Of a stretch of DNA of 64,000 bases, positions 1-53,927 are shown piece after piece. Below the pieces are notes generated by a model, which was not told where the DNA came from, ran no database searches, and saw only the letters and a list, made by a program, of their open reading frames with translations. This stretch comes from Paramoeba atlantica (lineage: Eukaryota > Protista > Discosea), in contig CDRNVI010000019.1 in NCBI GenBank assembly GCA_977017575.1, positions 558,001 to 622,000 on the forward strand, written 5' to 3'. The position numbers were made by a program, and so were the translations under genes. The first letter of the stretch is position 1; each line of letters opens with the position of its first letter.

Positions 1-270
1 GTAGTGACGGGATCTGAATTGTACCGGAGGAGGGATTCTATCTGTTGGTGTTTTGCCAGATTCTTCAGTTCGTCGATTGTGACCTTCCCATTTGCGACCT
101 GTTTGAACAGCTCCGTGACCGCCCCTCTCTTGGCTGAATGTGTCCCAAAAGCTTGACCGAGCGTTTGCTTGATATTTCGATCCATCTGTCGTACGTTCGT
201 TCGGCACGTTGTGTTCCACGACTTGAGCGTATGAACGTATTGGGCAAGCTCCGGAGTGCCTTCCCCAAGA
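1..270 (-). pseudogene. Distal part of the E2 tyrosine recombinase gene, split from 5236-6062 by insertion of E1
   Basis: The minus strand reads LGEGTPELAQYV...HSAKRGAV...KHQQIESLLRY (HxxR, H and Y catalytic motifs), closely matching E3 YR. Joining 5236 to 270 restores MYTVI-LGEG in frame. Confidence 0.92.
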
Positions 271-517
271 GAAATCAGCGTCTTCTTTCTCACACATAAT
301 GAACAAGAATAAATAAAATGAAACCAATTCCTAAATCATGTAATATCTTTCTTCATAAAGCAATTCAAAGAATTCAACTGCTTTAGTATCCTCACCACCT
401 ATCCATGAAAAGAAATTAAGGTACCTGGCCATTTCAATCAAACTTACAGTATTTGAAACAAATCCACAACAAACTCCTTTACTTACGAACGGGCATCCCG
501 TCCGCCAACTCCGCGAA
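271..517. repeat. E1 repeat B2 (247 bp), copy of B1 793-1039
   Basis: Direct repeat gaaatcagcg...ctccgcgaa. Confidence 0.95.
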
Positions 518-540
518 GTGGTTGGGGGTTGGTGGGAGGG

Positions 541-792
541 CGCAATAAAAAGGTTAGAGAAGGAGTGTCACTATACCAAACTAAATAAATGAAATCTCTA
601 AACAAAACAAACAAATCATATCTCATAATATAAATATTATGTGCCCCCAAGGGCCATTATATCAATCATCCTAAATTTCTAAACGTACACTTATATAAAC
701 AAAACAAACAAATCATATCTCATAATATAAATATTATGTGCCCCGAAGGGCCATTATATCAATCATCCTAAATTTCTAAACGTATACTTATA
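541..792. repeat. E1 repeat A2 (252 bp) with an internal 2 x 97-bp tandem
   Basis: Matches 4984-5235. Internal units 599-695 and 696-792. Confidence 0.95.
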
Positions 793-1039
793 GAAATCAG
801 CGTCTTCTTTCTCACACATAATGAACAAGAATAAATAAAATGAAACCAATTCCTAAATCATGTAATATCTTTCTTCATAAAGCAATTCAAAGAATTCAAC
901 TGCTTTAGTATCCTCACCACCTATCCATGAAAAGAAATTAAGGTACCTGGCCATTTCAATCAAACTTACAGTATTTGAAACAAATCCACAACAAACTCCT
1001 TTACTTACGAACGGGCATCCCGTCCGCCAACTCCGCGAA
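793..1039. repeat. E1 repeat B1
   Basis: Direct repeat of 271-517. Confidence 0.95.
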
Positions 1040-1194
1040 CCAGCCCGCTCGCACGTAATACTACCACCCGAGCGCATGTGTTTTCAGCAAATGGTGGCGG
1101 CCACCTACTGAAACACCTACATATATAGCCTACATATATAGTATATTATTATTTTATTTTTTTGAGTACTACATTATTTCTGATTTGAATACTT

Positions 1195-3996
1195 TCATAA
1201 CCGGCTAATCGGGTCCGCGGGGTTATCGGCAGATTTTATGTAGCGAGCCATAATGCATACGCCAAGATTCTGATTCTTTTTGAGTATATGTTTGAGCTCC
1301 CCCGCAATGCTATCTGATTTTGCAACTTTACGATTAAGGGCAGCTTTGCACGACGTATTATCTATAAAGAGGTCCACACAAGTCCCCTTTTGAAAGTGGT
1401 GGCCCAGTTTTTCAAATGCCAGTCGAACTGCCATAGCCTCCGCATGATTAACTTCATATTTAAATTCCGGTTCCCACGAGTCCCCCACAATGATCACTTG
1501 ACCATCGTCCCGGTACAGAACTGCCCCCCATCCTTTAGCGGACGCGTCCGTGTAAAGACTATGCCTATGAGGAACGACATCCGGGTGTGGTGGCGGTGCG
1601 ATTGGTTCGTTCCGTAAAATGATATTCCTCCAGTCCGCCAGGATAGAACGAGTTGCTGTCGGAAGCGGAACAGGATACTCCGCCAGTTTGGGATTTCTAT
1701 TGAGCTCATTGATCCGTCGTCGAACAATCTTTAAAGGAAAATGATACTCAGGAATGATATGTCCCAAGACCGCTGCCGCGTAGAGGAGGCGCCCCACCGC
1801 CGTCTCCAGTTGAGAAAACGTTATGTTACGATAGCGATCGCGCGACATTTTTTGTAAAACCCTAGGTCCCAGGCTGACCTTGTGGGTTTCATGATTGTAC
1901 AGGACTCCATTGAACACATATTCCTTGGAAGGGTCGGATCCGGTCTCCTTAAATAAGCCACCGACTTGAGCACACCGTCCGTCAACAAAGTTAACAAATT
2001 TGATGCATTCTTCACGGGTTCCGGCAAATCGAATACCGTCTATGTAAATATCCACGGAGCCAATACAGGAGCCCAGTGTGGGCTTGCATACAGCGGAGTC
2101 GCACGCGATAGCTGCTGTCAGTTTGTGCATAATTTCCGGGGCGCATCGGTGCCCCATGGGCATAACTTTCATCTGGTGCAAGACTCCATCTTGGTCACGA
2201 AAACGAAATTTGGCACGTGCCGCGCGCGGAACTCCGATTTGGTAGAACCCGCAACGTAAGTCGCGCTTAACGCCTGCTTCTTCCTCAGCCTTATGCAGAT
2301 ACCAAGAAGGGTGCAATAAAGGAACGTCGGGCTTATAGTCCTTTAATCTGATATTGTCGTCCTTGGTCCAGGATATGAATCGGCGCCGGGCGTTCCCCTC
2401 CTCATCGGATTCAACTACGGTAAAAGGAATAACGTATTGTAAAGTCGGATGCTGATGGAGTTCTTTCTGTTCGACTGTTTCAATCACTCCAGCGTCAAGC
2501 AAACCAACGACATCAGCTTCCGAAAGATTACCTTTGATTGCTGGTTCGGTCTGCGCTGCAAGTCGCGTGTCAAATAAGTGTCTCATCACGGTTTCCAGGC
2601 GGTGAAGCGCACCAGGGGACATCCAAGTCTTCACTTTCTGCACGTCCATTACGGGTATTCCAGCCTTAACGTGTAGGGGGAGGTTCATGTCTTCGGGACG
2701 TGCAAGACGGGAAGTGCGCCGCGCGCAAATAACACTGTATCGCCTAACGTGCGGTATTTGATCGAAACAAAGGTTGACATCCTCTTGAGTTATAGGGTTG
2801 GTAGGAGAACCGAAGCTCGCTGCGTACCGAGCGCCTTTGCCGTTGTTATCAGGTTCCCGTTGTATCGTAATAGGGAGTTGATGCATTGATGTTTGGCTAT
2901 GTTTTGCACGTCTGAGAGAGCGACGCGTCCGAGCGCCACCTCGTTGAAGAGATACGTTATCGCGCCCCGCTTCAGGGAGTGTGTCCCGTAGCCGGGGCCC
3001 AGAATTTTCTTCATTTTCACGTCCATTTCCCGAACCGTTGTGCTTGTCACCTGCTGACCCTTCCTCATAAACCGGACGTATTCCGCAATCTCTAGAGTTC
3101 CTTCCCCTTGTATGGCTGTGCACATCGATAAGCGGTACGGGTTGAGACGAGTCGATTTGGTGTTCCGTCCCCAATAGACTATGACTTCGTTCGGTTGATT
3201 TCGCACGAATCTTTCGAGGGTTAGTTCTGCGACTTCTGTCCATCTGGCTGCGGCCTTCCAACAGATCAACGCGGCGATCCCTTCGCTTAACGATAATTTT
3301 GTCCTTAGCCGGCGTAGTTGCCACGGAGTGATTGGCTCCATCTGACGCGTTGGTTCGAGAGCGCCTCTTGCCTGTAGAGCTTTTGCAAACATTTTGAGAG
3401 GGGTAGGATCGGTTTGACTCAGCTGAAATACGGTTTGAAGATTGCGAGTGTAGCTCAACAGTGTCGCGGGTGCCAGATCCATTTGCTGAAGGAACAAAAC
3501 GGCGTGTATTGGATCTGGTGGTACCCCTCTTTCCCGACAAAAAAGTTCGAGCCTTCCCCACAGTCGTGCCCTTGAGAGCCAAGTAGCATTCGTCCACATG
3601 GGATTTATCGCGGTTCTCATTTGGTGTGCTAGCGGGCTCGTACTTGGTAGATTCAAAATTGTGCATGTTAGCTTGTCCTGGGCAGACTGCACGTCCAGTT
3701 TCCTGATTTTGTTTCCGGCAGGATATACTGCTAGAGATCGTTTGGCCTGACCCGCCCTTGAGTACGTCCTTACTTCCGCCACCCGATGCTGTGGCTTCTG
3801 CAGTCCCGTTCCGTGACATGCCACAAAGGCATGCACCTTCCCTGCAGAGTGCAAATATGAGCTGAATGATAGACCTGGACAAATCACCCGCCGCTTTTTC
3901 AGCGGACAGGCACGAGCGATGTAAGGGGTGGGGAGCACTACCTAGTGACTCCTCTTTGCACTCGAAGTGCCGCTCGTCACCCCTCCGCGAAAACCC
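1195..3996 (-). CDS. E1 reverse transcriptase-RNase H, in the -1 frame relative to gag and open from the heptamer at 3990-3996
   Basis: RT motifs KRDLRCGFYQ, MPMGHRCAPEIM, YIDG. DIRS-type RNase H LYTDAS...AEAMAV...FIDN...NPADPISR. The ORF-track start at 3882 is TTG and the frame stays open upstream of it. Confidence 0.9.
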   Translation of the reverse strand, partial: GFSRRGDERHFECKEESLGSAPHPLHRSCLSAEKAAGDLSRSIIQLIFALCREGACLCGMSRNGTAEATASGGGSKDVLKGGSGQTISSSISCRKQNQETGRAVCPGQANMHNFESTKYEPASTPNENRDKSHVDECYLALKGTTVGKARTFLSGKRGTTRSNTRRFVPSANGSGTRDTVELHSQSSNRISAESNRSYPSQNVCKSSTGKRRSRTNASDGANHSVATTPAKDKIIVKRRDRRVDLLEGRSQMDRSRRTNPRKIRAKSTERSHSLLGTEHQIDSSQPVPLIDVHSHTRGRNSRDCGIRPVYEEGSAGDKHNGSGNGRENEENSGPRLRDTLPEAGRDNVSLQRGGARTRRSLRRAKHSQTSMHQLPITIQREPDNNGKGARYAASFGSPTNPITQEDVNLCFDQIPHVRRYSVICARRTSRLARPEDMNLPLHVKAGIPVMDVQKVKTWMSPGALHRLETVMRHLFDTRLAAQTEPAIKGNLSEADVVGLLDAGVIETVEQKELHQHPTLQYVIPFTVVESDEEGNARRRFISWTKDDNIRLKDYKPDVPLLHPSWYLHKAEEEAGVKRDLRCGFYQIGVPRAARAKFRFRDQDGVLHQMKVMPMGHRCAPEIMHKLTAAIACDSAVCKPTLGSCIGSVDIYIDGIRFAGTREECIKFVNFVDGRCAQVGGLFKETGSDPSKEYVFNGVLYNHETHKVSLGPRVLQKMSRDRYRNITFSQLETAVGRLLYAAAVLGHIIPEYHFPLKIVRRRINELNRNPKLAEYPVPLPTATRSILADWRNIILRNEPIAPPPHPDVVPHRHSLYTDASAKGWGAVLYRDDGQVIIVGDSWEPEFKYEVNHAEAMAVRLAFEKLGHHFQKGTCVDLFIDNTSCKAALNRKVAKSDSIAGELKHILKKNQNLGVCIMARYIKSADNPADPISRL
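2790..3941 (-). CDS. E1 tyrosine recombinase, in frame behind the gag TAG
   Basis: AARWTE (R), KST (K), HSLKRG (HxxR), KHQ (H), LLRY (Y). Confidence 0.92.
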   Translation of the reverse strand, partial: VVLPTPYIARACPLKKRRVICPGLSFSSYLHSAGKVHAFVACHGTGLQKPQHRVAEVRTYSRAGQAKRSLAVYPAGNKIRKLDVQSAQDKLTCTILNLPSTSPLAHQMRTAINPMWTNATWLSRARLWGRLELFCRERGVPPDPIHAVLFLQQMDLAPATLLSYTRNLQTVFQLSQTDPTPLKMFAKALQARGALEPTRQMEPITPWQLRRLRTKLSLSEGIAALICWKAAARWTEVAELTLERFVRNQPNEVIVYWGRNTKSTRLNPYRLSMCTAIQGEGTLEIAEYVRFMRKGQQVTSTTVREMDVKMKKILGPGYGTHSLKRGAITYLFNEVALGRVALSDVQNIAKHQCINSLLRYNGNLITTAKALGTQRASVLLPTL

Positions 3997-4982
3997 GGGG
4001 TCAAGCGAGTAGACGATTGATTTAACGGGCAGTTCGCTCGGAAATGACCTGGTTTGTGGCAGCGGTAGCAGAGAAAGGCCGGGCGATTCGTCGATTGTTT
4101 AGATACCGTCATGTTCCGTAGCTTTTCTTCTGCAACTGCCTTGGAGTACGCGTCCTTCGTTTCGTCATCTTTGTGCAGTTTTAACTGAACGCGCTCTACC
4201 TGAATTCCAGATGAGGCCCAATAATTATTCCGAAGTTCTTCAATTGCCGTACGTACGATTTCCATGAAATGTTCTTCGCGCCAGAAAGGATAGATTCGGG
4301 CTGCCTGAATCCACTCCTGTACTATTTTAAACAGCCGTTCACGAATTGGAGGTGCATTCAGCAAGAGGCCAAACTCGGGATGGGCCCGCAAATCACGTAT
4401 GAGATCCCGGACGCGGAGCTCATCCTCCGACTCCAGCCATGGTCCCCACGTGAGGGGGTCGTTCGCGGTGAATCGAGCCGGGTCAGTAATGGGTGCATTA
4501 GGAGTCTTAGGTTCCTCGTCCGCCTTTCGGCCACCAGGCATCTTAGCACGTACTCAAACAATTTCTAAGGAGTAGTACTCGATGTCCGGAAAAGGGAAGT
4601 CGTACGCCATTCCGGGATCGTCAGTCCACACAGCTTCCATGGTACCTGACCCGTCCGATTTCAAGCGTACATTCCCAGTGACAGTATCGCGCACTGCATC
4701 GCCTTGATGGCCCCAAACCGCCTCTACCGACACGTCGTAACCTTTCGCAATCAAAGTCTGAACCTTCTGTGCGAATTCCGCCTTAGCTTCCCCCGACATT
4801 GCCGCCGAACCTGTTCCCCCCCGAAGCAAAGCCGCCACTTGCTCCGGGTTAAGCGTGGTACGTTGCTCCCCATACTGCAAACTTGGGTCAACCGGATTAG
4901 GGGAAGAAGGATCTTCTCGAACAGGACTCTGTTGCCTCCCCATTGACAACGTACGGCGAACAGTATTCAAAATGCCGGACAT
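3942..4982 (-). CDS. E1 Gag-like protein with a CCHC knuckle and one in-frame TGA at 4554-4556
   Basis: ORFs 4554-5093 and 3942-4541 are in the same frame and are colinear with the single gag ORF of E4. Knuckle CYRCHKPGHFRANC. Confidence 0.88.
3990..3996 (-). promoter_or_regulatory. Candidate -1 frameshift heptamer G_GGU_UUU (E1)
   Basis: Phased on the gag frame, 45 nt before the gag stop. The -1 frame is open into RT. Confidence 0.7.
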
Positions 4983-4983
4983 T

Positions 4984-5235
4984 CGCAATAAAAAGGTTAG
5001 AGAAGGAGTGTCACTATACCAAACTAAATAAATGAAATCTCTAAACAAAACAAACAAATCATATCTCATAATATAAATATTATGTGCCCCCAAGGGCCAT
5101 TATATCAATCATCCTAAATTTCTAAACGTACACTTATATAAACAAAACAAACAAATCATATCTCATAATATAAATATTATGTGCCCCGAAGGGCCATTAT
5201 ATCAATCATCCTAAATTTCTAAACGTATACTTATA
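4984..5235. repeat. E1 repeat A1 (whole 5' leader; gag ATG follows at 4982)
   Basis: Direct repeat of 541-792. Confidence 0.95.
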
Positions 5236-6062
5236 ATTACTGTGTACATTGATGGTCGCCACTGGTCGCAACGCGACGCCTTTGTTCCTCTGCCCCAGGC
5301 GATTACTATTCTTTGCGAGGTCACCTGTACGAATCTTTCTGTCGTTAAATTTGCTGTCTCGGTCCAGCGGGAGGCAGCTTTCCAGCACAGTAGCATTGTC
5401 ATGCTTTCCGATTGAGTCAGATTCTTTCGTAGCTTGTTCAAGAGGTATGGTGTTAGTGGTTCCATTTGGTGTTTCGGCTCCTCCGCACCCTCGGCTTGTA
5501 GCGCTTTGCAGAAAAATTTTATTGGTACAGTGCTCTCTCCGATTAGGTTGAACAGTGCCATTATTGCTCGAGCGTACGTTATTTTCGTTTGCGGAGATAT
5601 CGGGAGAAGCTGAATGAAAGCGACTGCATGTATTGGACTTAGATGTATCTTTTTCCACGTGCAAAAGGTCCTGAACCTTTCCCAAAGCCTTGCCCTTGAA
5701 TCCCACGTTGATGTGCTCCACATTGAGGCCATCCCATCCAAGGCCACTCTGACTTCGTGAGTGATCGTACTCACCCCCATCAACAGGCTTATCAGGTTTC
5801 TCCTGCCTGATTGCGCCGACTCCAAACTTAACGTTCCCTGATATAATTTTCCAGATGAAATTAATCTCCCGTCGTAGCTCCGCGCATTGACTACATTCTG
5901 TGCTGTCGTCTTTCTTCGTTTGCTGTGCGGAGCCTCGATCTGCGATGAAATTCTTTTGTATACTATGGACTTCTGTGGTACCATTTGATGCGAAATTTTC
6001 GTTCCTACGTCGATTCTCCGGTATTCTATATTCGGAACACTGGCGATTAAAGGACGGGCGTT
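5236..6062 (-). pseudogene. E2 tyrosine recombinase, N-terminal part, in frame behind the gag TGA
   Basis: No stop between 6062 and the ATG at 5984. Contains AASRWTET and ends MYTVI at the E1 junction. Confidence 0.9.
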
Positions 6063-7118
6063 TCATAACGTCTTGGCGCTGTGCGCGCTGCCAGCCGCCC
6101 TCTGGCGAAAATCCGGTGGTGATGATCTTTTGTACGGACAATCCTTCAAGAAATGATCAGGAGATCGGCAATTGTAACACACTGGGCGCCCTACATTGGA
6201 AGAAGCATAACTCGGATACATTTGTCTCGGCTGACCAAAAGAACGATAACTTCGATTCACATAATTTGATCCGGAGTAGCGCGCACGAAATTTCTCTCGA
6301 TCGGATAACTGATCCGACACGTGTTGATAAAATTTGTCGTGTGATCTGTCCTCTTTATCCAACTTCTGGTGGACTGCCTCTACATCTACCTTGCACGCTC
6401 GCCAATATGAGTCTCGAAGACTCTGAACGATTGCTTTACCCAACTCCAAGAAAGGACCTTCAGACCATCCTGGGGTATCCGGCGCCAACATAATCCATTT
6501 CCCTAGCAAATTGTCGAAGTTTCGCTCTTGCTGTTTCTGAAATGAACGATCCTGAAAGAATTGATTGAGTCGCAAACCATATTCCGGTGCCTCCTTCAGT
6601 TCCCGAATCAAATCACGAATGCGAAATCCCTCATCATTACGGGCATCGATCCACGCTGGCCAAGTAATAGGTTCATAAGGGTCTAACTTTAACGAATTCA
6701 TTGATGCGAATGATTGCAGATTTGGAGGCAGGGGCCGTCCGCCGTCCAATGGCTGCGTCTCCGGAAGATTATTCGAGGACTGTGGTTCGGCTTCTTCCAG
6801 GTCAATACGAAAGTAATTCAGATCATTGTGAGGAAAGGGGTACTCACGCGTGGGATCGTCCTCCCAGACGGCCCACATTTCCATGCCTTCACGTCGAATC
6901 TTGCCATGCGAAGTACGTTTTGCCGAAGTCGACGCGTCTTTTCGTTGCCATACCGCTTTAATGTGCAGAACCGGTGCCACATCCTTCGCCAGCAAAAGCT
7001 TTTCACACACTCTTGATTTCATTATGCTCATTTCCGAGCTTCCCATCGGATTCTCTGGCACGATCGATGGACTACGCGTTTCGCGTGGTGATAGAGTCTC
7101 TCGCGGCGACTGAGGCAT
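6063..7118 (-). CDS. E2 Gag-like protein (CCHC)
   Basis: 351 aa, knuckle CYNCRSPDHFLKDC, highly similar to E3 gag. Confidence 0.9.
   Translation of the reverse strand: MPQSPRETLSPRETRSPSIVPENPMGSSEMSIMKSRVCEKLLLAKDVAPVLHIKAVWQRKDASTSAKRTSHGKIRREGMEMWAVWEDDPTREYPFPHNDLNYFRIDLEEAEPQSSNNLPETQPLDGGRPLPPNLQSFASMNSLKLDPYEPITWPAWIDARNDEGFRIRDLIRELKEAPEYGLRLNQFFQDRSFQKQQERNFDNLLGKWIMLAPDTPGWSEGPFLELGKAIVQSLRDSYWRACKVDVEAVHQKLDKEDRSHDKFYQHVSDQLSDREKFRARYSGSNYVNRSYRSFGQPRQMYPSYASSNVGRPVCYNCRSPDHFLKDCPYKRSSPPDFRQRAAGSAHSAKTL
6108..6114 (-). promoter_or_regulatory. Candidate -1 frameshift heptamer G_GAU_UUU (E2)
   Basis: Phased on the gag frame, 42 nt before TGA. The -1 frame opens shortly upstream and stays open. 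Confidence 0.7.
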
Positions 7119-7510
7119 AGGAAAATTTTTTCGTACGGATATAATCTTCTATCCTTTACCAAAGTATAAATAATTGATGTACGATTAAACTCTGACAATT
7201 TAACTAAGTAAAAATCATAATATGAGAATATCATGTGCCCCGTGGGGCCACCCCCCCACCCTACAGGAAACTCGATATCCTTCGAACAATTCTATTCGTA
7301 GACTTCTAGACACGGTCACGAAACAGGATGCTGGCCGACGGGGAGGAGATTCACTGCCCGTGTACTACCTCACTTGGGGTACCTAGCCCTCGCGGGCTAG
7401 GCGTGAGTATAGACTCTGTCGACCCGACCAGCATCCGGGCTCACATTAGAGAACCTCACTCATGAGAGCAAGGCTTGAGAATAGGTGGGTAAGACACAGT
7501 GGGTAGGGGC

Positions 7511-10420
7511 TTATGCCCCTACCAAAGACCCCGCTGGATCCGCCACGGGGATGCGTGACACCATCATCCGGGCCTGCGAACGCATGAGCGTAACATTCAG
7601 CTCCGTCAAGAGTTCATTTCGCGCTTGGCTCCGTGACAGAAACCCCTTGGACGCATTCGCCCGTTGCGTTCCGATATCCCGGAGTAACGCTAGGGCACTT
7701 TCACTCCAGGACCCAAAGGACTCTACAACCATTGCTGTGAAGAGATGCCCGGCTTCGTCTGCTTCTTGTCGCTGTCGCGCCTTGGTCTCGGCATAGTGCG
7801 CGGCAAAAGACCCTGGGGTCACCCAGCTAGCATTACGGACTGAGTCCAAATACTTTAATTGCTGGGCGTGGGTGACCGCAAAGTCCAATACCATGCCTTG
7901 CGCCAGAGTCCCTTTTGCCAAGGATGCAGTGGGCAGGAAGACATCCGCAGGCCTCGTGAGAGCTCCTCCGGGGCCTCGGTTTCCGAGACTCATCTCGCGC
8001 CGTGGTCCCAATTGGGCCTTGGAACAGAAAGATGTGAATTGTTGTGCCAGGGAGTTGTGGCGGGCGATGATGCCATGCCCATTTTTACAGAGCAAGGCGT
8101 GTTCACCGTTCTTGAGGAGAGGGAGGGCACAGCCTTCGGCGGGACAAGGCCTATCCTCTGGGAAAACATCCACCCCCAACCACCAACGTGATAGCGTCCG
8201 GAACTCCGTGGGGGTGAAAGCCAACCCTCTTTGCTTTGAGGGTGTCACAAAAACCCAGTTTCCGGCCCCTTTACCTGACTGAGAAACCCAGCGTGCCCTT
8301 GTTCGGGCGTCTGCCCTTGCGTAAGCAGCATAGAACTCCTGTTCAGCGATTGCGTGGCTCAGGTGTTTTTGTCGTGGTACGATGGTTTCTGGTTCTGTGG
8401 TGTCGGGTAAAAGGGGGTGGCGGAGGGAATGGGAAAGTTTTCTTTTCGCCGGGCGTGACTGGGCGTCCCGTGCCTCGTTGTGGTAGTCTGGTGAGCTTGG
8501 CTTGAGGATACGTCCAGTATACAGATCGACCAGGACAGTCCCAACTTTTTGATTTATTTCGCGTGCCGAATCAAGAAACCCTTCAGCTTCGGCTGCATCC
8601 CACTTATCCTTGTCGGAGGCAAAAGCCACAGAAGAAACGTATGCGGCCGAGTGGTGAAGCAACGATGAGCGAAGGCCGAATCCCCCGTAACGTTTGGGCC
8701 GTTGTAGTTGGTCACGGGCGGGAAGATCAAGAGGAAAAAGTGCGTGTTCCACAGCGCGCATGAGGTGAAAATCCAGCTGTCGACAGAGTTCTCCGAGGCC
8801 TTGGGGAGGGGTGGTACGCAGTGCGTATACCATTTGGCAGAATCCGGCGCACTGCCTTATAAGGGCGAAGGCCACTTGCGGGTCTTCTATCAGGGAAATG
8901 GCTTCCAACGTATCGCGGGCTGGCTCGATCGTGTGTGTCCTTAGGAAATTCGCACAGTGTTCTGGAGAGCCCACCGGACTCCCAAGGATATCAAAGTTTC
9001 CGTCATACCTTATTTTGTCGCTAGGAATGTCGGGGAAAAAAGCAGAGGTGTGGGCAGACGCAGGCGGGGTGATGATTTCACATTTTGAGAGGTTCAGAAA
9101 GAGTCCCCACTGAGTTCCCACTTCCGCGAGAACGTCTAGTGCCTTCCGGACTTCCTGTGGTTCGCCAATGATCACACCATCATCGAGATACCATAACTGT
9201 GTTTGGAGCTTTGTACGCGATGCGATTTCCTCCGTTGCCCCCGACAAAACCAAAGAGAACAGGAGGGGACCTAGGGGATCACCTTGCTGCACGCCCTCGG
9301 CCGAAGGAATTAAATTGTCACCAAATGTTAGACAGCTGTGGTTGGCGTAACACCACTCAACCCATGGGGACAACTCGGGGAAATGCTTTCGCGTGAGGAA
9401 GATAAACACCGGCCTACTGACATTGTTAAAGGCGTTGCGGAGATCCACTTTACAGAAGGTTATATTTTCGTTTTCCATGTTGTTGAGCATCAACCTACGA
9501 CAATTGTGAATGGCTCGCTCTGCTCCGGCGGGCGCCGCGACGCCGTACTGTTTGCAGCCGAAGAAGGAACTTGCCTTTTCCTTTAAAGAAAGACACGCTG
9601 CCTTGCTGACCAAACGTCGTAGCGTTTCCCCCGCAGCAATAGGCCTCACGTCTTCTTCGTCCTTTTCGAGCGCGCAGAGTCGTGCACCTGCAAAGAAGGG
9701 GTGTACTTCATCCGGGCCTCTGCCTGCTAAAAGGTGGTTCACAAAGGACGTGAGCGCCAGGAGTGGATCCATGTTCTGGTCAACATGCTCTTGCAGTGCT
9801 GCTTGTAGGTGTTCGGGTCGAAGACCCATGGTTCCGGCGGAGGAGCCGCGGTGAAAACTATTCACGGCCTTTTTTACTTCCGATTCGTCCAGCTGTAAAA
9901 AGTCTTCTTTCAATGGTGGCAAAGGGCAGGAGATAGGATTCCCGTGGGAGCTAGGATGTTTCCTTTGCAACTTTCGCAATGTTTCTTCGTTGTGCGGCGC
10001 GAGGGGAGCTGCCGTCAGGGCTGCCATTCCTCTGGAAAATTCCCCGTCACGGACCAGAAGTTCTGCTCGTACTATAGCCTTTTCCACGTCGTTCTCGTTG
10101 CTCGTGTTCTTCGGGCGTTTTCTCTCGTGATCGGACACAGCTTGAGACCAAAGGGTCGAGTATTGTCCTTCCATCCAAAGCTCCATTCTTTTGAGAATGT
10201 ACGACGAGTAAGTGATATGGGCTTTGCGGCCTCCTCGGAACGGGGCTGGAAGGACGCACTTTGGAAGTAAGGCAAGGAGCGTCCACGCCCTCACTGAATT
10301 TTCGCGCACCGCTGTGGATAGGGCGTAAGTCAATATCTGGGCCCACATGCGTCGGCATCGGTGTGGGACGTCTTTGCAGGTGTTTATCGGTGTCGTGCAT
10401 ATTTGCTCCAGAGAGGGTAG
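7511..10420 (-). CDS. CRE-clade non-LTR retrotransposon RT + restriction-like endonuclease (lineage C), 5'-truncated
   Basis: EGVQQGDPLGPLLFSL, WYLDDG, CCHC region (CPAEGC...HALLC...RHN), RPAD...LDFAVTH...VESFG. The first ~20 aa of the track ORF come from T-tracts and the E5 end. Confidence 0.9.
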   Translation of the reverse strand, partial: LPSLEQICTTPINTCKDVPHRCRRMWAQILTYALSTAVRENSVRAWTLLALLPKCVLPAPFRGGRKAHITYSSYILKRMELWMEGQYSTLWSQAVSDHERKRPKNTSNENDVEKAIVRAELLVRDGEFSRGMAALTAAPLAPHNEETLRKLQRKHPSSHGNPISCPLPPLKEDFLQLDESEVKKAVNSFHRGSSAGTMGLRPEHLQAALQEHVDQNMDPLLALTSFVNHLLAGRGPDEVHPFFAGARLCALEKDEEDVRPIAAGETLRRLVSKAACLSLKEKASSFFGCKQYGVAAPAGAERAIHNCRRLMLNNMENENITFCKVDLRNAFNNVSRPVFIFLTRKHFPELSPWVEWCYANHSCLTFGDNLIPSAEGVQQGDPLGPLLFSLVLSGATEEIASRTKLQTQLWYLDDGVIIGEPQEVRKALDVLAEVGTQWGLFLNLSKCEIITPPASAHTSAFFPDIPSDKIRYDGNFDILGSPVGSPEHCANFLRTHTIEPARDTLEAISLIEDPQVAFALIRQCAGFCQMVYALRTTPPQGLGELCRQLDFHLMRAVEHALFPLDLPARDQLQRPKRYGGFGLRSSLLHHSAAYVSSVAFASDKDKWDAAEAEGFLDSAREINQKVGTVLVDLYTGRILKPSSPDYHNEARDAQSRPAKRKLSHSLRHPLLPDTTEPETIVPRQKHLSHAIAEQEFYAAYARADARTRARWVSQSGKGAGNWVFVTPSKQRGLAFTPTEFRTLSRWWLGVDVFPEDRPCPAEGCALPLLKNGEHALLCKNGHGIIARHNSLAQQFTSFCSKAQLGPRREMSLGNRGPGGALTRPADVFLPTASLAKGTLAQGMVLDFAVTHAQQLKYLDSVRNASWVTPGSFAAHYAETKARQRQEADEAGHLFTAMVVESFGSWSESALALLRDIGTQRANASKGFLSRSQARNELLTELNVTLMRSQARMMVSRIPVADPAGSLVGA

Positions 10421-12472
10421 CTTTTTTTTTTTGTTAAGACACTTTTTTTTTCTATGAGACTGATCTCCATGCGAAGCGAACATGTTAGAAAGTAACCAAT
10501 AAGTAAATTCAACTAGTAGTATATATTTCTGTTGGCATTTTTCATCAGCATAAGAAGTAATTTAAATCACACACAGTTGTTAATGGTCCCTCCTTGTGAA
10601 AGACCTTCTTGATTGTTTTGTGCACCAATTATTTTATGTTAGTGTTTTCTGAAAAACTCTGTGGATCTATAACAATAAATCAGTCTTTCGGAAAACCCAA
10701 CAGAAATATACGATTTTTTACATATAAAAAATCCATTTATGAATAAATTTTCTTTTTTCTATGAGACTGATCTCCATGCGAAGCGAACATGTTAGAAAGT
10801 AACCAATAAGTAAATTCAACTAGTAGTATATATTTCTGTTGGCATTTTTCATCAGCATAAGAAGTAATTTAAATCACACACAGTTGTTAATGGTCCCTCC
10901 TTGTGAAAGACCTTCTTGATTGTTTTGTGCACCAATTATTTTATGTTAGTGTTTTCTGAAAAACTCTGTGGATCGACGCCATGCCTGTCGCCAGCGTCGC
11001 CTAGAGTGTGACTCCAGCCAATGCTCTGGAGGGCTTGTCTGCCGGATTCTTATCCGAGGAACACCAGATTACGTTACCAATGACCCCCTTCACCTTGAAC
11101 CATAGCAGCCTTTCAAGCTATCTCATCACTTTTGGTGGCCCTGCCCGCCAGCGCGTCAACCACGATACTACATTTTTGTTATTCGAAACAATTGTACCAT
11201 TCTGTATACCTAAACTATGAAGAAGCTTCATCCCCTGCTCTGCGGCGAATAATTCCTTGTACGCTATAGGTGAATCGTGTAACCAGGTAGGGAACCGTCC
11301 AGCCCTGTATTTCAGAGTGTCTTGCTCTGTCCAGGCCAACCCCCATCCGTGCTCCGAGGCATCCACGAAGATTTCAAACGGCGCAATCTGGTTCTCTCTA
11401 ACTTTACGTGGTTGGTTTTCTTCTACCTTCTGAATCAATGCGACCAAAGCAGCGATAAAGGACGTTGACATGGCGCAAGGTTTGTCCCATAAAGAAGAAT
11501 CGAACGCCAACCTCCGCGACCGACCTCTAACCCAAATCATTACACCCATGAATTGACATTGTTTTATTCCCAAGATTCGTGTGGCCCAAAATAGAGTTCC
11601 GAGCACTTTCCAGATCAATCGATGAGAAGGGAAAAACTTTTGTCTTTTTAGAGTCTCAAACGCCTCTCGTAAAGCCGCCAGCTTCTGAAGAAAGGGTTCG
11701 GGCAAAGCGAGCGTTTTTTGCGTTAAATCCACCTGCACTCCCAATATTGTGCCCTTCTTAGAGGGAGAAGTGGTAACGACAACCTCTGCACCCACTTTGG
11801 TCGCTCGCTGTTGAATGCTTCGTAAATCCTGTAGCAATGTCTCTTCGTCCTTCGCAAAGGTGTATCCATTGTCAATGAAGGTCAATGATCGTCCGTTTGC
11901 ACCTATGTTGTATATCACGTTTGTAGCCGCGTGGGCAATCTTGACAGAAGCCTGCCAGCCCATTGGTAATGTGGACCAGCCATAGGTGCGACCTTTAATG
12001 CGCACGGCGAAATACGGGAGCAGTTGTTCAGGTAAGGAAAATTGATGATACCAGCTTTTGCCATCGGTCTCGCAGAAATACTCATTGTACGCCACTAATT
12101 CTTCAATGTCCTCAAGGCGCGCAAGATTTAGTGGTCCCGGAACCATTTCCTGCATTTCATTGAGAGGTATGGCATTCAAAATCACTCTCATGGCCTTCTT
12201 CTTTTGTTTAGGCACCAGAAACGAAGTCATCCAGACACGTACAGAACGTCGGGGTATATACTTCACAATCTTGGCTTTCAGCATATCGCCAAGTACGGGT
12301 TCTAACCTACGCGATTCACCTCGATATCGCAGATCGCGGGGTTTTATTAATAATTCAATAAATTTTTTGTAGTTAAAAATATATGCAAACAGCTCAGCCT
12401 CTTCCTTCATTCCTTCTTGTGTGGCCATTTTTATCAACTCCGAAATGTTGATTCTGGCTGACGAGACCGTGT

Positions 12473-14710
12473 CTAGCGGCCAGTCTCGCTCACAGGGGCG
12501 GATTCTCTCTCCTCGTCGGGCTGGTCGATTTCCAAAGAGTCGCATATTTGCGTACGTTGGGTATGCGACGAAATCGCGTAAGATTTCCCATGGAGAGGTG
12601 CTCGCACCGACAGGTGCGGCGACGCAGGCTCGCCCATAATGGTGCTGAACCTCGCCTTTTTCTTCTGATTGAAAATTGATGCTAACTCCTCCTGTTCGTC
12701 GTACTGATTTTCCCACTCCATTGTCTGCTCGACCCCTTCTATATACTCGCTGAGCGTCTTTTGTTCGTCGCGCTTGCGTTTCCTGGTTCGTAACGGGTCG
12801 GAAAAATTTGCGTTCAGCGGGTCGATAAGATATTTCGGCAGACGGGGCTTGGGCCGCGGCGTATCCGTCAGAGAAACGTTGGGAAGCATGTGAACCATCC
12901 CGCGCGAAAAATCTTTTTGACACCACGTGGGGTTTTCTGTCGTCCCCATTTCCTGTAATACCTCCCGTTCGATCGTCATATACGGATAAGGAAGGTTTTC
13001 CCCAAGCGGAACTGGTCGTGACGCGGGGGTGAAGCACGGGGTCGGGAGTTCGGGAATCATGACACAATGTGTTATTGGCGCCGATCGAGGGGTGTTCTTT
13101 GCAGAATGACTGTGTGGGGAAGGCGTGTGGGGGATTGGAGGGAGGGAATCGATCACGGGATTTATGACGTCTTCTATAGCGGGGTTTATGACGTCTTCTA
13201 CGGTTTTGCAGGGCGGAAAAATCGGACGACTGAGCCGCGACTCCTCCCCGTGGGAGTCCGATTCCATGTGAATCGGGGTAGGAGTAAACTGTAGACGCCG
13301 AGGCGGACTCGACTCCAAGGCAGACGCCAGACAACTCAACGGCGTCTGGATCTCCGTGTGGGCAACTGGATTTTGGGGAGTCGGTGCTGGGGAGAACTCT
13401 AGACACCGCGGCAGACTTTCTAGTGCGGGCATTGGTGTCTTCGTTGCCCTCTGTTCGGTATTGTTGATGCTTAATTGGGGCGGTTCCCGAGTGTTGCCGC
13501 TCCTGTTTCCCGTTTGGCCCACTGTTTCTTCTGGAGGATCGATTAACATTTCTTCTGGAGGTTCGATCGCCAAGGTGGGTATTGCTCGATGATTTGACGT
13601 TTCCGCTTCGGGGTGTTCGTGGGGAACTCTCGCGTCGCGTCCCAGCATGCGTGTTGTTTCGAGCCCCGCCACTGCATGCGGATCTAGAAACGACCCTAGG
13701 TAGGCCCGCAGGGACGATTCCGATACATGACGAGTGAGATGTTGAATTTCCCTGGCACTTATCCCCGATGCAGCGAGGTGCTGAAGGGAGCCTCGTCTTA
13801 TCGAATACAACGTATGGTGTTCCTTGAGCAATGGGTGGTAATTGTCGACCGGAATTTGCCGTATCTGTTGGTCGATGCGACGAAGATCTATCGGGAATAA
13901 ATTTTCGGATGCATTTTGCCGGCTGTTCCAAACATGATTCTCGATCAATTTCCTCCAAAATCCCGGTACGAACATTCTCACACACCGAGGAGATAGCCTT
14001 TCTTGAGTATTCGTGTTTTTGCAGTGCTGATACATCCATAGGTTGACTTGCAATTCGTTGTTTATCGTACTCATGGCCACATCTTTCACTTTCTGACGCA
14101 TTAAATCTCCCGGGCGTTGACCCGAGAGCCAATAGATTGCTAGAAAGGCTTTCTCTTCGGTGAATAGCGCCGAACTTCCAATGAGGTTTTTTATATGGGT
14201 CAAGCCTAAGGGATTCGCTCTCTGCGCCGGACATGCTCTGCGATACATAGCTCCCTTTAAGGCTTCTATTTTTGATTTTTGAAGGACCAGTCCCCGGAGG
14301 GCGTACTCGTTTTCTAGATGACAAAGGTATTGAACTATCGTTTGACCCTTGAGTCCCTCTGACTCGCTTAGATGAATACAGAAACTCGCTAGATAAATTT
14401 CCTCTTCGAGAAAATGTCCGTATTCCTTGAGAAGTGCCGCATAGCTCTGGTACCGGCGCCAGACTCGGCACATTATGTCCCTGGTCCCTTCCGCGTATTT
14501 CTCGCGAAAGACGTCTTCTGCTTTCCTCACTTCCAGACAGGCTGTTTGCTCTTCTATTTTTAATAAATCTATAATTTTTGGTGCGTAATCTGTTGAAATA
14601 ATTTCTTCCAGAAAAGATCGGCCGGCGCCGAGGAAACATTGCATTGGGGTTACTGTACGGTCTTTTCTCTCCCCGTACAGCTTGATGGGGCGTCCGGCCC
14701 CGGGGCCGGA
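12473..14710 (-). CDS. E5 tyrosine recombinase with a long Pro/Ser-rich C-terminal tail, in frame behind the gag TGA
   Basis: GQRPGD (R), YSIRRG, RHVS, LRAY. 22 open codons link the gag stop to the ATG at 14644. Confidence 0.85.
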   Translation of the reverse strand, partial: SGPGAGRPIKLYGERKDRTVTPMQCFLGAGRSFLEEIISTDYAPKIIDLLKIEEQTACLEVRKAEDVFREKYAEGTRDIMCRVWRRYQSYAALLKEYGHFLEEEIYLASFCIHLSESEGLKGQTIVQYLCHLENEYALRGLVLQKSKIEALKGAMYRRACPAQRANPLGLTHIKNLIGSSALFTEEKAFLAIYWLSGQRPGDLMRQKVKDVAMSTINNELQVNLWMYQHCKNTNTQERLSPRCVRMFVPGFWRKLIENHVWNSRQNASENLFPIDLRRIDQQIRQIPVDNYHPLLKEHHTLYSIRRGSLQHLAASGISAREIQHLTRHVSESSLRAYLGSFLDPHAVAGLETTRMLGRDARVPHEHPEAETSNHRAIPTLAIEPPEEMLIDPPEETVGQTGNRSGNTREPPQLSINNTEQRATKTPMPALESLPRCLEFSPAPTPQNPVAHTEIQTPLSCLASALESSPPRRLQFTPTPIHMESDSHGEESRLSRPIFPPCKTVEDVINPAIEDVINPVIDSLPPIPHTPSPHSHSAKNTPRSAPITHCVMIPELPTPCFTPASRPVPLGENLPYPYMTIEREVLQEMGTTENPTWCQKDFSRGMVHMLPNVSLTDTPRPKPRLPKYLIDPLNANFSDPLRTRKRKRDEQKTLSEYIEGVEQTMEWENQYDEQEELASIFNQKKKARFSTIMGEPASPHLSVRAPLHGKSYAISSHTQRTQICDSLEIDQPDEERESAPVSETGR

Positions 14711-15496
14711 TCATTGAGATCCGGCGTTGGCCTGGCCGTTGTGGGAGGCCAGTCCCCGTCCACCTCGGGCGCGGCCGAATCCTCGGCTGTAACCTCGCGT
14801 ACGTTCTCCGAACCCGCGCCCTCCTCCGTTTTTTGCAGCCATCGCTGCACCTTGAGCGATGGAAGTATTCTGATAGTACATCATGGTTGCCTCGTGAGCA
14901 GTGGTATACTGATCGTCCATAGGCGCACTTCGCGCTGTTTCTTTCCAGTACCGTCCGTACTCTCGTCCGAACTTATGCTTGTACCGCAGGTAATGTAAAT
15001 TCTCGAAAGCGGGCTCAACCGACATCATGGAAAACGGACGCCCCGCTCGAGCATGCCCCCCGCAGTCCTCCAAATGCTTAGATATCGTATCCAGGCTTTC
15101 TCGCAGACTGATCGCGTCACCTGCGACTGCACCAGGATCTTTCGAATTACCGAAATGCTTGCGGATCTCATGCTCCAATCGCCCGATCAGATTTCGTCGA
15201 TAGAGTTCACTGCAGAAGTGCCGATATTCCCATTCTTTAGGACGGAACAGCTTATCCTGGGGAAGGTCATGTGCTGCCGGATCGTACCCACTCGGCGCAG
15301 TGACGTTTTTCGCAGCCATTCCGAGGGCTTCACGTATCTGAGCAGATTGTCGTTCAACTGTCGCCTCTAAAAGACCAATTCTTTCCTTATCGATTTGCGC
15401 AGTGGCCATCATTTCCTCCATGCGCTTCATCATCCGCGTGTTTTCACTCAACTGGAGAACTACATCTCGAGGTGACGGTGGCTGACCTTCGGACAT
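14711..15496 (-). CDS. E5 Gag-like ORF (coiled-coil N-terminus, RGG-rich C-terminus, no CCHC)
   Basis: 261 aa, first ORF after repeat A1, ends GGGRGFG...RGGRG. Confidence 0.7.
   Translation of the reverse strand: MSEGQPPSPRDVVLQLSENTRMMKRMEEMMATAQIDKERIGLLEATVERQSAQIREALGMAAKNVTAPSGYDPAAHDLPQDKLFRPKEWEYRHFCSELYRRNLIGRLEHEIRKHFGNSKDPGAVAGDAISLRESLDTISKHLEDCGGHARAGRPFSMMSVEPAFENLHYLRYKHKFGREYGRYWKETARSAPMDDQYTTAHEATMMYYQNTSIAQGAAMAAKNGGGRGFGERTRGYSRGFGRARGGRGLASHNGQANAGSQ
14828..14834 (-). promoter_or_regulatory. Candidate -1 frameshift heptamer A_AAA_AAC (E5)
   Basis: Canonical heptamer in gag phase, a 6-nt spacer, then an 8-bp stem GGGCGCGG/CCGCGCCC (14814-14821 with 14767-14774). The -1 frame is open into RT. 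Confidence 0.75.
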
Positions 15497-19956: not shown

Positions 19957-20692
19957 GAATTGCACTTCCGGAAGAAAAACATATAGTCAATCAGATATAG
20001 TAAGCGTATGTAAACTGTAATGTTTAATCTGTAGAACTACATAGCTACCGAAATATAACATCCATCATGGACAACAGAGTAAAAGACATTATCTTCACCA
20101 GTACTGTAATATCAACTTCGCGAAGTAAGTATCAAACCTATTTTATATACCTCATGAACTTTTTCCTGGAGAGAACTCCCTTCCCTCCCTTTCTCGAACG
20201 GGTGTCCACGCGGGGAGTGGTTTGGGGGTTGGTGGGTGGGGCAAAAAGTTTCAAAGGATAAAAACGCGCTCTATTACCAGTTCACTGTATAATGTTTTGT
20301 GTCACTATATAAACTAGTTTATGAATAACAAACGTACAATGCCCGTCGGCCAACTAACGTAAATATAATTCTCAGAAATCAAAATTTCCATTGTACAATT
20401 CTTTTCGTAAACTTTTAGAATTGCACTTCCGGAAGAAAAACATATAGTCAATCAGATATAGTAAGCGTATGTAAACTGTAATGTTTAATCTGTAGAACTA
20501 CATAGCTACCGAAATATAACATCCATCATGGACAACAGAGTAAAAGACATTATCTTCACCAGTACTGTAATATCAACTTCGCGAAGTAAGTATCAAACCT
20601 ATTTTATATACCTCATGAACTTTTTCCTGGAGAGAACTCCCTTCCCTCCCTTTCTCGAACGGGTGTCCACGCGGGGACCACCCTTTCGCCAG

Positions 20693-23587: not shown

Positions 23588-24573
23588 TCTTTAATCAAAT
23601 GGTCTGGTGATCTGCAATTGTAACATTGCGCGCGATAAGTTCCGTACGAGGGGCGAAACGATTGTGAACATTGACCTGTTGATCCTCCTCCGAAATATGT
23701 CCCTGTTCGTCGTAGCGCAGAGAAAGAAGTGTACCGACTACGTTGCTTTTCACGCTCACTCAACTGATCTGTTACATGCTGATAGAATTTGTCGTGCGCC
23801 CGATCATCTTTGTCCATTTTTCGGTGAACCGCCTCCACGTCTACCTTGCAAGCACGCCAGTAAGCATCACGTAGACTTTGGATTATCGCTTTCCCCAACT
23901 CCAAAAACGGACCTTCATTCCAGCCCGGAGTTTGGCGTGCCAACAATATCCACTTTCCCAGCAACTGATCGAAATTCCGCTCCTGTTGCATCTGAAATGA
24001 TTTGTCCTGATAATATTGATTCAATCTCAAACCATACTCGGGAGCTTCCTTTAATTCTCGAAAAAGGTCCTTAATTCGAAAGCCGTCGTCGTTGCGTTGA
24101 TCTATATGCCCCGGCCAAGTCACAGGTTCATACGGATCAATCTTGTAGGTCGCTACAGATCCAAAGGGCTGCACGTTAATAGGCAGGGGCCGTCCGCCTT
24201 CCAACGCACACTCTTGTCCTTCGCTCGAGTGTCCCAGTCCGTCTTCTAGATCAATGCGATAGTAATTTAACTCTTTGTGGGGAAATGGATACTCTCGATC
24301 TGGCTCCTCTTCCCATACCGCCCACATTTCCATCCCGACTCGACGTACTTTCCCGTGGGATATTTGTTTCGCCGAAGTCGCCGCGTTCTTCCGATTCCAT
24401 GCCGCCTTAATGTGCAACGAATGATTCTGATCGCGGGAAAGAAGCAGTTGCTCACAAACTCTCGTCTTCACCACGGCCAACTCTTCTCTACTCATGGGGT
24501 TGTCTGGTACCACTGAAGGTTCACGGGACACGCTTCTCCGTGCCTCTATGGAGCTACGCGGCGACGGAGGCAT
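23506..24573 (-). CDS. E3 Gag-like protein (CCHC)
   Basis: 355 aa, knuckle CYNCRSPDHLIKDC. Confidence 0.9.
   Translation of the reverse strand: MPPSPRSSIEARRSVSREPSVVPDNPMSREELAVVKTRVCEQLLLSRDQNHSLHIKAAWNRKNAATSAKQISHGKVRRVGMEMWAVWEEEPDREYPFPHKELNYYRIDLEDGLGHSSEGQECALEGGRPLPINVQPFGSVATYKIDPYEPVTWPGHIDQRNDDGFRIKDLFRELKEAPEYGLRLNQYYQDKSFQMQQERNFDQLLGKWILLARQTPGWNEGPFLELGKAIIQSLRDAYWRACKVDVEAVHRKMDKDDRAHDKFYQHVTDQLSEREKQRSRYTSFSALRRTGTYFGGGSTGQCSQSFRPSYGTYRAQCYNCRSPDHLIKDCPYKRTSPPDFRQRTAGNAPQGGKSL
23554..23560 (-). promoter_or_regulatory. Candidate -1 frameshift heptamer G_GAU_UUU (E3)
   Basis: Gag phase, 45 nt before TGA. The -1 frame opens only ~11 codons upstream. Confidence 0.72.
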
Positions 24574-24949
24574 AAAAAAAGTTTCAAAGGATAAAAACGC
24601 GCTCTATTACCAGTTCACTGTATAATGTTTTGTGTCACTATATAAACTAGTTTATGAATAACAAACGTACAATGCCCGTCGGCCAACTAACGTAAATATA
24701 ATTCTCAGAAATCAAAATTTCCATTGTACAATTCTTTTCGTAAACTTTTAATGAGAACACGTGAGTGGTTCGTTTCTTCGTCGCCTCCATTTTCGCATCC
24801 TGTATCAGGCGTTTGTTGTTGAGTTAAGATATCACACGTGTTCACATATCGCACATATGTCCCGCATAAACGATTAGAAGTATGAACACCGACGATAAAA
24901 ATTCTGAAAAGGATGCATTTGGGGATTTAATCCTTTTGTTTAGTGTCAC

Positions 24950-25185
24950 TGTCTGTGAACATTCATCTCAGTTTCTTTTCATAGACTTTCAGTCGTCTAA
25001 ACTTCAACTCTTATATCAATAGTCAACGCCTACCGAAAAACTCGCACGTGCCTAAAAAGCCGTATTGTCTGTGAACATTCATCTCAGTTTCTTTTCATAG
25101 ACTTTCAGTCGTCTAAACTTCAACTCTTATATCAATAGTCAACGCCTACCGAAAAACTCGCACGTGCCTAAAAAGCCGTATTGTC
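24950..25185. repeat. 2 x 116-bp tandem duplication at a CRE 3' end
   Basis: tgtctgtgaac... starts at both 24950 and 25066. Confidence 0.9.
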
Positions 25186-33705: not shown

Positions 33706-34168
33706 TCAACGACGAGAGTCTTCCACATACATTAAAAACAACTTGTAAGAAAACATTGTTGTAAGAGCTAAAGAAATATATCGCTGATATCCTGAATCTC
33801 ATCCACTGCCTATATTTACTAGCTAAAGAATATTCGTATTATTGATGCAACTATCCGGATGTATATAGCGCGCAAACTATTTCAAAAGCATAATATAAAA
33901 ATATAATACGTAGTGAAGGGGCTTTGCCCCCTGGCACGCAGCCACCACCCCGATCGCTCGTCTCCTCACAACATCCTGTCTCTCGTATATTAAATCGCTG
34001 CACGTTCCACATACAAAATTCCATTGCGAAGCTGGCCAAGCTGCGAACGGAAGCTTGATAAACCTACATTTGATCATTCACTAAATACATATTTTTTTTT
34101 TTTTTTTTTTTTTTGAAAGAAGAAGCAATCTTTTTTTTTTTTTTTGTGTGTGTGTGTGTGTTTAATCT

Positions 34169-45093: not shown

Positions 45094-45148
45094 CAACAAG
45101 GTCAACAAGGTACAACAAGGTACAGAAACTGTATCTTTATCGTTAAAG
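45094..45148 (-). other. Spliced-leader relic (45113-45148) followed by two truncated copies of its 3' end
   Basis: CTTTAACGATAAAGATACAGTTTCTGTACCTTGTTG-TACCTTGTTG-ACCTTGTTG, 19 nt before the ATG. Confidence 0.8.
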
Positions 45149-53862: not shown

Positions 53863-53889
53863 AACGATTGAGATAATAAGAAAATAAAT

Positions 53890-53927
53890 CAACAAGGTAC
53901 AGAAACTGTATCTTTATCGTTAAAGTT
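53890..53927 (-). other. Complete 38-nt spliced-leader relic
   Basis: AACTTTAACGATAAAGATACAGTTTCTGTACCTTGTTG, 27 nt before the ATG. Confidence 0.82.

Follow-up and report, generated by a model that had tools for sequence, protein, structure and literature searches.

The 64,000-nt stretch of DNA analysed here, referred to as the window (positions 558,001 to 622,000 of the forward strand of contig CDRNVI010000019.1, GenBank assembly GCA_977017575.1, Paramoeba atlantica), contains five retrotransposons on its minus strand, E1 to E5. Tests of their gene order, catalytic residues and repeats identify them as VIPER-type tyrosine-recombinase (YR) retrotransposons, of the VIPER-like group in the DIRS order. 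In each of them YR continues the gag frame behind the gag stop, and the reverse transcriptase (RT) and ribonuclease H (RNaseH) are encoded in the -1 frame, which is already open upstream of that stop. We propose, with evenly divided confidence in the model as a whole, that one mRNA may give rise to Gag, to Gag-RT by -1 frameshifting and, probably, to Gag-YR by readthrough of the gag stop.

Frame layout of the VIPER-type elements

Three-frame stop maps drawn from each gag ATG gave the same picture in all five elements: the gag frame has a single stop and is then open for a further 283-745 codons, the -1 frame is free of stops from a point 82-259 nt before the gag stop to the end of the RT/RNaseH open reading frame (ORF), and the +1 frame meets a stop about every 40 nt. 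A preliminary description of the window had placed YR in the gag frame behind one stop (TAG 3942-3944 in E1, TGA 6063-6065 in E2, TGA 23506-23508 in E3, TAG 36937-36939 in E4 and TGA 14711-14713 in E5) and RT/RNaseH in the -1 frame, open from upstream of that stop, and had noted that TTG and GTG are the starts given to most of the YR and RT frames in the program-made ORF list. These points hold in all five elements, with the qualification that the gag gene of E1, read from ATG 4982, also carries a premature in-frame TGA (4554-4556), despite terminal repeats that are 100% identical; base 4556 differs in contigs of another run.

E1 illustrates the arrangement (all features of E1 to E5 given here and below are on the minus strand). 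Its 5' repeat A1 (4984-5235, 252 nt) is 100% identical to 541-792 and is followed by the gag ATG at 4982. The gag gene (3942-4982) encodes a CCHC knuckle (Pfam zf-CCHC) and ends in TAG 3942-3944, past which frame 0 continues for 383 codons (2790-3941, TAA 2790-2792), made up of about 90 poorly conserved linker codons and then the YR core; the first ATG past the stop is codon 107. The -1 frame (1195-4098, TGA 1195-1197) opens 154 nt upstream of the gag stop and encodes RT/RNaseH at about 1198-2715, preceded over YR by about 380 unconserved codons rich in S, R and G. The 3' repeats (300-1039) comprise B1 (822-1039), A2 (541-792) and B2 (300-517).

The order gag, YR, RT/RNaseH is common to the window elements, and protease, methyltransferase and DDE integrase are not among their Pfam domains. 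Pfam identified zf-CCHC in gag, RVT_1 and RT_RNaseH in the -1 ORFs and a weak Phage_integrase match in frame 0 of E5, and no further domains in the ORFs of these elements. An alignment of YR from nine lineages showed R232, K261, H350 and Y359 to be invariant, with HSIKRG in the consensus, and the catalytic R, K, HxxR, H and Y are visible in it; YR profile matches to Tre/Cre and integrases were marginal (E = 6e-4 to 0.09). E1 and E3 have split direct repeats arranged as A1...B1-A2-B2 with 100% identity, and none were detected around E4; according to Ribeiro et al. (PMC6681497), VIPER, Ngaro and PAT are arranged in this way. The nearest named relatives are proteins of Papus and Diplonema, and word-based homologue searches matched just 4 and 3 unnamed ENA proteins. 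By eye, the YR motif ASRWSE and the motif MW..STW match the published Trypanosoma cruzi VIPER sequences. The 3' end of a spliced leader (SL; ...CAGTTTCTGTACCTTGTTG) lies in the window, which indicates that the host is a kinetoplastid.

Conservation of the layout in other copies, other samples and T. cruzi

The genome set comprised 50 fetched loci and the window (55 copies), in a genome of 45.7 Mb with at least 108 scored YR matches among 501 candidates. These copies form 15 junction families, and the layout was kept in every copy that was not obviously decayed. The frame offsets across the copies, for which the preliminary description had suggested a tally, were not random: gag and YR are in frame 0 and RT is in the -1 frame in the 15 families. 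This layout is shared by seven contigs that come from other samples (L051-L056 and L059), and a transcript-derived ORF of the prokinetoplastid Papus starts in the -1 frame with the transframe motif EEGFSKGG.

A comparison with VIPER had also been suggested, and the published ORF coordinates bear out both the gene order and the frame layout. In T. cruzi Dm28c (ORF1 6599-7939, ORF2 7940-8956, ORF3 7816-10653; PMC6681497 supplements), ORF2 follows in the gag frame right after the stop, and ORF3 is in the -1 frame, opening 124 nt upstream and running across the whole of ORF2. Since this element has the same frame layout, the layout can be regarded as a property of the VIPER group. One review describes Viper elements as usually lacking ORF overlaps, and the VIPER literature that we examined neither discusses the layout nor describes recoding.

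In the same genome, three E5-type YR matches (G000 C55:175101-175922, C16:2813-3691 and C20:139185-139661) lie in open frames of 1240-1359 aa. These copies may hold gag and YR, or more, in one stop-less ORF; stop-less ORFs of the gag-YR type have been reported for two Bodo saltans TATE copies (Ribeiro 2019, PMC6681497).

A selected but probably unstructured -1 frame across the recombinase gene

When the YR ORFs were shuffled by synonymous codons, 10-12 stops were expected in the -1 frame (30 in E5) compared to 0 observed, and a -1 frame without stops did not arise in any of 2000 shuffles; the +1 frame behaved as expected. Decayed copies gain -1 stops within the overlap, so that the openness is not a product of mutational bias. 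These comparisons indicate that the -1 frame is held open by selection.

We rejected a reading in which the part of the -1 frame over YR encodes a second genuine protein, given the lack of a codon-position signature, of conservation and of a predicted fold. Over the YR core, the most variable position between families is the third of frame 0. Amino acid identity between E1 and the lineage L013 is 0.53 for the -1 frame over YR, compared to 0.79 for YR in frame 0, 0.94 for gag and 0.83 for RT, and distant RT homologues align only from about residue 380 of the -1 ORF, which is where the overlap ends. In the AlphaFold model of the E1 -1 ORF, the predicted local distance difference test score (pLDDT) is about 30 for residues 1-388, which lack secondary structure, and about 90 for residues 390-895 (RT/RNaseH). 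Most simply, the -1 codons overlying YR (about 380 aa in E1) would form an unconserved, unstructured spacer that ribosomes traverse in the -1 frame and in which only openness matters. We likewise rejected a shift to RT at the 3' end of YR, which would not need a -1 frame open across YR. Traversal of YR in the -1 frame would rule out access to RT at the 3' end of YR or from an internal AUG.

Frame 0 is also open behind the gag stop, with no stop in its first 90 codons in 15 of 15 lineages. Part of this linker is near-neutral; were the -1 protein alone maintained, each lineage would lack stops here with a probability of 0.03-0.63. An NLS-like (nuclear localization signal) basic motif in frame 0 (KKRRV, VKRRV or RRRRV) was observed 13-20 codons past the gag stop at 3880-3900 of the window (minus strand) and in L013, L020, L022 and L032; its bases are at the same time the 3' strand of hairpin H4, described below, and the -1-frame AEKAAG, so that three constraints overlap there. 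In L020 and L023, the first 60 codons past the stop contain an internal duplication whose -1 reading is SCP..AE.AAGEL and whose frame-0 reading is RP..KRRV, with both frames open.

Slip sites and RNA fold at the gag end

The candidate slip site of E1, G_GGT_TTT (3990-3996), is in gag phase, with 45 nt between it and the stop, or 52 nt when counted from its first base; as G_GGU_UUU it is kept at this fixed 52-nt distance in relatives down to 55% YR identity (families at 55-80%). G_GAU_UUU occupies the homologous place in E2 (6108-6114, 42 nt before the stop), E3 (23554-23560), L022, the abundant L032 family, L051, L052 and L055. Both heptamers are experimentally proven slip sites, G_GAU_UUU being the mapped site of pea enation mosaic virus 2 (PEMV2) and G_GGU_UUU that of barley yellow dwarf virus (BYDV) (PMC4737148). 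E5 has A_AAA_AAC 114 nt before the stop, L053 and L054 have G_GGA_AAC, with the -1 frame of L054 opening exactly at the heptamer, L056 has G_GGG_GGA, and E4 has only G_AUU_UUU. Every lineage has either xxU_UUU or a strict heptamer, in gag phase and inside the segment in which the -1 frame is open, compared with a background of 0.0065-0.0077 per codon in the gag body. The gag-phased heptamers that the preliminary description had placed 42-114 nt before the stop are thus correctly positioned in all five elements, but among these five only E1 and E5 conform to the strict X_XXY_YYZ pattern; canonical heptamers were also found in L053, L054 and T. cruzi.

An RNA fold follows the slip site of E1 at a distance of 6 nt (3886-3983; per-family helix tables and RNAalifold, z = -2.06), and the spacer between slip site and structure is 6-7 nt. 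Helix S1, formed by GGGGUG (3978-3983) and CACCCC (3925-3930), closes a domain holding two hairpins, H2 (3958-3970) and H3 (3932-3952), the latter with the UAG in its loop. Helix S2 (3970-3977 with 3912-3919) is long-range and crosses S1, and hairpin H4 (3886-3911) lies farther downstream. Covariation was detected in S2, H2, H3 and H4: S2 shows compensatory and wobble changes, H2 and H4 show compensatory changes, and the sequence of H3 is wholly changed between families with its pairs kept. In E2 and E3 the arms follow the same a-b-a'-b' order, although the sequences are unrelated. Compared to shuffled sequences, the folds gave z = -1.98 in E3, z = -0.25 in E2 and z = +0.25 and -0.22 in E5, the last being indistinguishable from the shuffles; Rfam gave no match in the window. 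The T. cruzi junction, read by eye from the supplement text, carries TCA_AAA_AAC in gag phase, GGCCGA and a 10-bp stem (GGGGCUGCCG...CGGCAGCCCC) around CGC UCA UGA AUG. It folds with -34.7 kcal/mol (z = -3.98), the hairpin lying 6 nt past the heptamer with the UGA in its loop.

Over seven lineage pairs, synonymous differences amount to 24% between slip site and stop and to 58% in the gag body (p = 4e-8), and upstream of the stop the -1 peptide GFS.R.G.RH is recognisable across samples. In the TAG-type families the -1 frame lacks an AUG over 125-737 nt, and neither downstream frame has a conserved AUG. Kinetoplastid ribosomes are capable of programmed frameshifting, as they perform it on LRV1 (PMC3417650). 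The comparative evidence supports well, and makes it likely in our estimate, that Gag-RT would be produced by a -1 frameshift.

Several observations weigh against this conclusion. The strict scan found no X_XXY_YYZ heptamer in E2, E3 or E4, where the homologous site is non-canonical, and the G_AUU_UUU of E4 is only a putative slip site. S1 is nearly invariant and almost without covariation, and S1 and S2 can form together only as a pseudoknot with a zero-length loop 1. Conservation at the junction is largely confounded by double coding, and the lineages are related by descent, so that pooled p-values overstate independence.

Readthrough and reinitiation as routes to the recombinase

TAA is the gag stop in 0 of 19 lineages (nor is it in T. 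cruzi), compared to 13 of 35 YR and RT stops (p = 0.002). The base after TGA is C in 6 of the 10 TGA lineages, with UGA CUG or UGA CUC in L052-L056 and UGA-C in the E5-like L059, and UGA-C is a classic leaky stop context. The other contexts are UGA-A in E2 and E3, UGA-U in E5 and UAG-G in the TAG types, several of which (E4, L020, L051) have UAG GGA as in murine leukaemia virus (MLV). In most families the first frame-0 ATG lies 51-107 codons past the stop. Together with the frame-0 linker, which is open in 15 of 15 lineages and has no conserved AUG, these features make synthesis of Gag-YR by readthrough plausible, although the support is indirect, and we lean only slightly towards it.

The case against readthrough begins with the stop contexts themselves: UAG-G is not leaky on its own, and both the -1 frame and the fold place further constraints on the bases around the stop. 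An MLV-like conserved stem about 8 nt past the stop was looked for and not found, H4 at +33 being the only structure there. Finally, the positions of some ATGs fit reinitiation, namely a -1-frame ATG that overlaps the stop in E2, E3, E5, L054 and T. cruzi, and a frame-0 ATG that lies two codons past the stop in the L032 type, the most abundant family, and in L051, and directly past it in T. cruzi.

These ATGs allow the possibility that the frameshift is real and YR is a free protein, made by reinitiation a few codons past the gag stop, from AUG in L032, L051 and T. cruzi and from GUG, UUG or AGG elsewhere. The codon at +6, which is one base or less from AUG in all TAG-type families, is consistent with this, as is the lack of a readthrough structure at the usual spacing. 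However, unless special signals are present, reinitiation after an ORF of 200-550 codons is as a rule negligible, AGG makes a very poor start codon, and the avoidance of TAA and the UGA-CU contexts would be left unexplained. We consider a free YR unlikely.

Reinitiation could also be invoked for both enzymes, by termination-reinitiation of the victorivirus or calicivirus kind, with RT started from the AUG of AUGA, YR from the next AUG, and the upstream fold holding the ribosome. The ATGA overlaps in E2, E3, E5 and L054, the AUGAAUG of T. cruzi and the stable structure just upstream of the stop agree with such coupling. As a universal feature, however, ATGA was rejected: it occurs in only 5 of the 10 TGA lineages, and the start-stop overlap is absent in E1, E4, L013, L020, L023, L022, L052, L053, L055 and L056. 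The stretch of 125-737 nt without a -1 AUG in E1, E4 and the other TAG-type families speaks against it as well, as do the -1 frame, which always opens upstream of the slip site, the conservation of GFS.R.G before the stop, which includes the Papus transcript ORF, and the suppression of synonymous change upstream of the stop. This explanation appears quite improbable to us, and reinitiation overall, although a live rival in some lineages, cannot be the general mechanism. A CCCCACCCC tract may act towards the 18S rRNA of the organism as a tether of the reinitiation type.

Least probable of all, YR and RT might be made from their own trans-spliced mRNAs at internal AUGs, the frame relations being a historical accident: kinetoplastids process polycistronic RNA by SL trans-splicing and several families have frame-0 ATGs near the start of the YR core, but this would leave unexplained both the absence of stops in two frames from the gag stop over fast-evolving stretches and the conserved slip site and fold, and AUG positions are not conserved.

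A model for the gag junction

In the model of frameshifting combined with readthrough, most ribosomes would halt at the sole gag stop and yield Gag. Some would slip by -1 on the U-run or A-run heptamer, assisted by a pause from the RNA fold that begins about 6 nt downstream and encloses the gag stop, and would then read the -1 frame across the entire recombinase gene to give Gag-spacer-RT/RNaseH. Unslipped ribosomes would now and then decode the leaky UAG or UGA and, staying in frame 0, cross a short linker into the recombinase to give Gag-YR. In these protease-less elements, each enzyme would gain its own Gag tether.

Direct support exists for the layout and its conservation, for selection on both open frames, for the slip site and for covariation in the RNA, and it is from these that we infer slipping, readthrough and the ratios of the products. 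The preliminary description had proposed that one mRNA yields Gag, Gag-YR and Gag-linker-RT-RNaseH in tuned ratios. Its frameshift route has gained support from the slip site, the covariation in the fold and the suppressed synonymous change; the data are consistent with its readthrough route, and the tuning of the ratios is conjecture. It also weighs against the model that one possible RNA run did not contain the element, and that the other matching sets consist of DNA-like contigs and gave no useful starts, joints or SL ends. On a more tentative view, which we hold with somewhat less than even confidence, a cassette of about 100 nt would split ribosomes three ways and tether two enzymes separately to Gag, at the price of a kilobase dummy frame overprinted on the recombinase gene and held open solely as a spacer, and would be ancient and common to free-living kinetoplastids, Papus and T. 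cruzi VIPER.

Relation to known systems

Recoding at gag-pol junctions is classical, and each part of the proposed cassette has known counterparts. T. cruzi VIPER (Lorenzi 2006; Ribeiro 2019, PMC6681497) shares the gag-YR-RT/RNaseH order, the CCHC gag, the A1...B1-A2-B2 repeats, the frame layout, and a heptamer with a stem at the gag end. It differs in having A_AAA_AAC and UGA, where the elements studied here have mostly UAG-G stops and U-run slip sites, and these elements form many divergent families in a non-trypanosomatid-like kinetoplastid. The -1 cassettes of umbraviruses and luteoviruses (G_GAU_UUU in PEMV2, G_GGU_UUU in BYDV) and the retroviral gag-pro/pol junctions resemble ours in the identical heptamers, the short spacer, the downstream structure and a zero-frame stop soon after. 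In contrast with them, the shifted frame here crosses 1.1-2.2 kb of another gene before the polymerase.

For the in-frame enzyme, the counterparts are MLV gag-pol (UAG-G with a pseudoknot) and UGA-CU readthrough, which likewise place an enzyme in frame behind one UAG or UGA, and the UAG GGA of E4, L020 and L051 and the UGA CUG/CUC of L052-L056 match them. Unlike in MLV, there is no conserved pseudoknot 8 nt past the stop, and the stop lies inside the frameshift stimulator. AUGA/UAAUG coupling, as in victoriviruses, caliciviruses and influenza B, has a parallel in E2, E3, E5, L054 and T. cruzi VIPER, where an AUGA overlap is closely preceded by a structure, but it is absent from most families here; what is conserved in its place is the slip site and the frame relation to the upstream ORF.

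The preliminary description knew of no account of two recoding mechanisms at a single junction, and our literature search found none either; nor did we find a description of recoding in any tyrosine-recombinase retrotransposon, and neither DIRS nor YR elements have an entry in the available part of the Atkins 2016 review. If correct, the model would be the first for translation of VIPER-type elements, in which ORF2 and ORF3 lack evident starts, and would correct their annotation. It would also add cellular cases of -1 frameshifting, and possibly of readthrough, in kinetoplastids, explain kilobase-scale overlapping frames as a spacer that needs openness and not as a second protein, and suggest that two recoding outcomes at one junction stand in for the role of a protease.

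Remaining elements and surroundings in the window

E1 with its repeats (246-5235) sits inside the YR/RT overlap of E2. The 5' part of E2 (5236-7118) contains gag (6063-7118), the slip site given above and a -1-frame ATG overlapping the TGA, and the element continues at 1-245, in register with E3. E2 is not a short element but one split by the insertion of E1. E3 (19957-24750) has A1...B1-A2-B2 repeats, gag at 23506-24573, YR at 22342-23505 and a -1 ORF reaching 20693; its junction, with the slip site at 23554-23560 and TGA 23506-23508, has an ATGA overlap. Just upstream of the A1 repeat of E3, a 116-nt unit is tandemly duplicated (24950-25181).

In E4 (34169-37899), gag lies at 36937-37899 and YR at 35758-36936, and the -1 ORF extends to 34169; the junction has G_ATT_TTT at 37009-37015 and TAG 36937-36939 in the context CAC UAG GGA. 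E5 (11118-15496) is divergent, with a long YR: gag is at 14711-15496, the YR ORF at 12473-14710 and the -1 ORF extends to 11118, so that the YR and -1 ORFs overlap by 2.2 kb. At its junction, A_AAA_AAC (14828-14834) is followed by a 7-nt spacer and a stem, and the UGA (TGA 14711-14713), at the hairpin apex, has an ATGA overlap.

Retroelements fill almost the whole window and include SL-specific and apurinic/apyrimidinic endonuclease (APE)-type non-long-terminal-repeat (non-LTR) elements. An RVT_1 ORF at 41574-45074 is closely preceded by repeated SL 3' ends at 45094-45148 (minus strand; ...CAGTTTCTGTACCTTGTTG followed by TACCTTGTTG and ACCTTGTTG), and together these look like a CRE/SLACS-like element inserted in SL genes. 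A non-LTR retrotransposon ORF at 30808-33735 (plus strand) encodes an AP endonuclease (Exo_endo_phos) and RVT_1, and further RVT_1 ORFs are present at 7511-10483, 46511-49648, 50323-53895 and 55855-59214.

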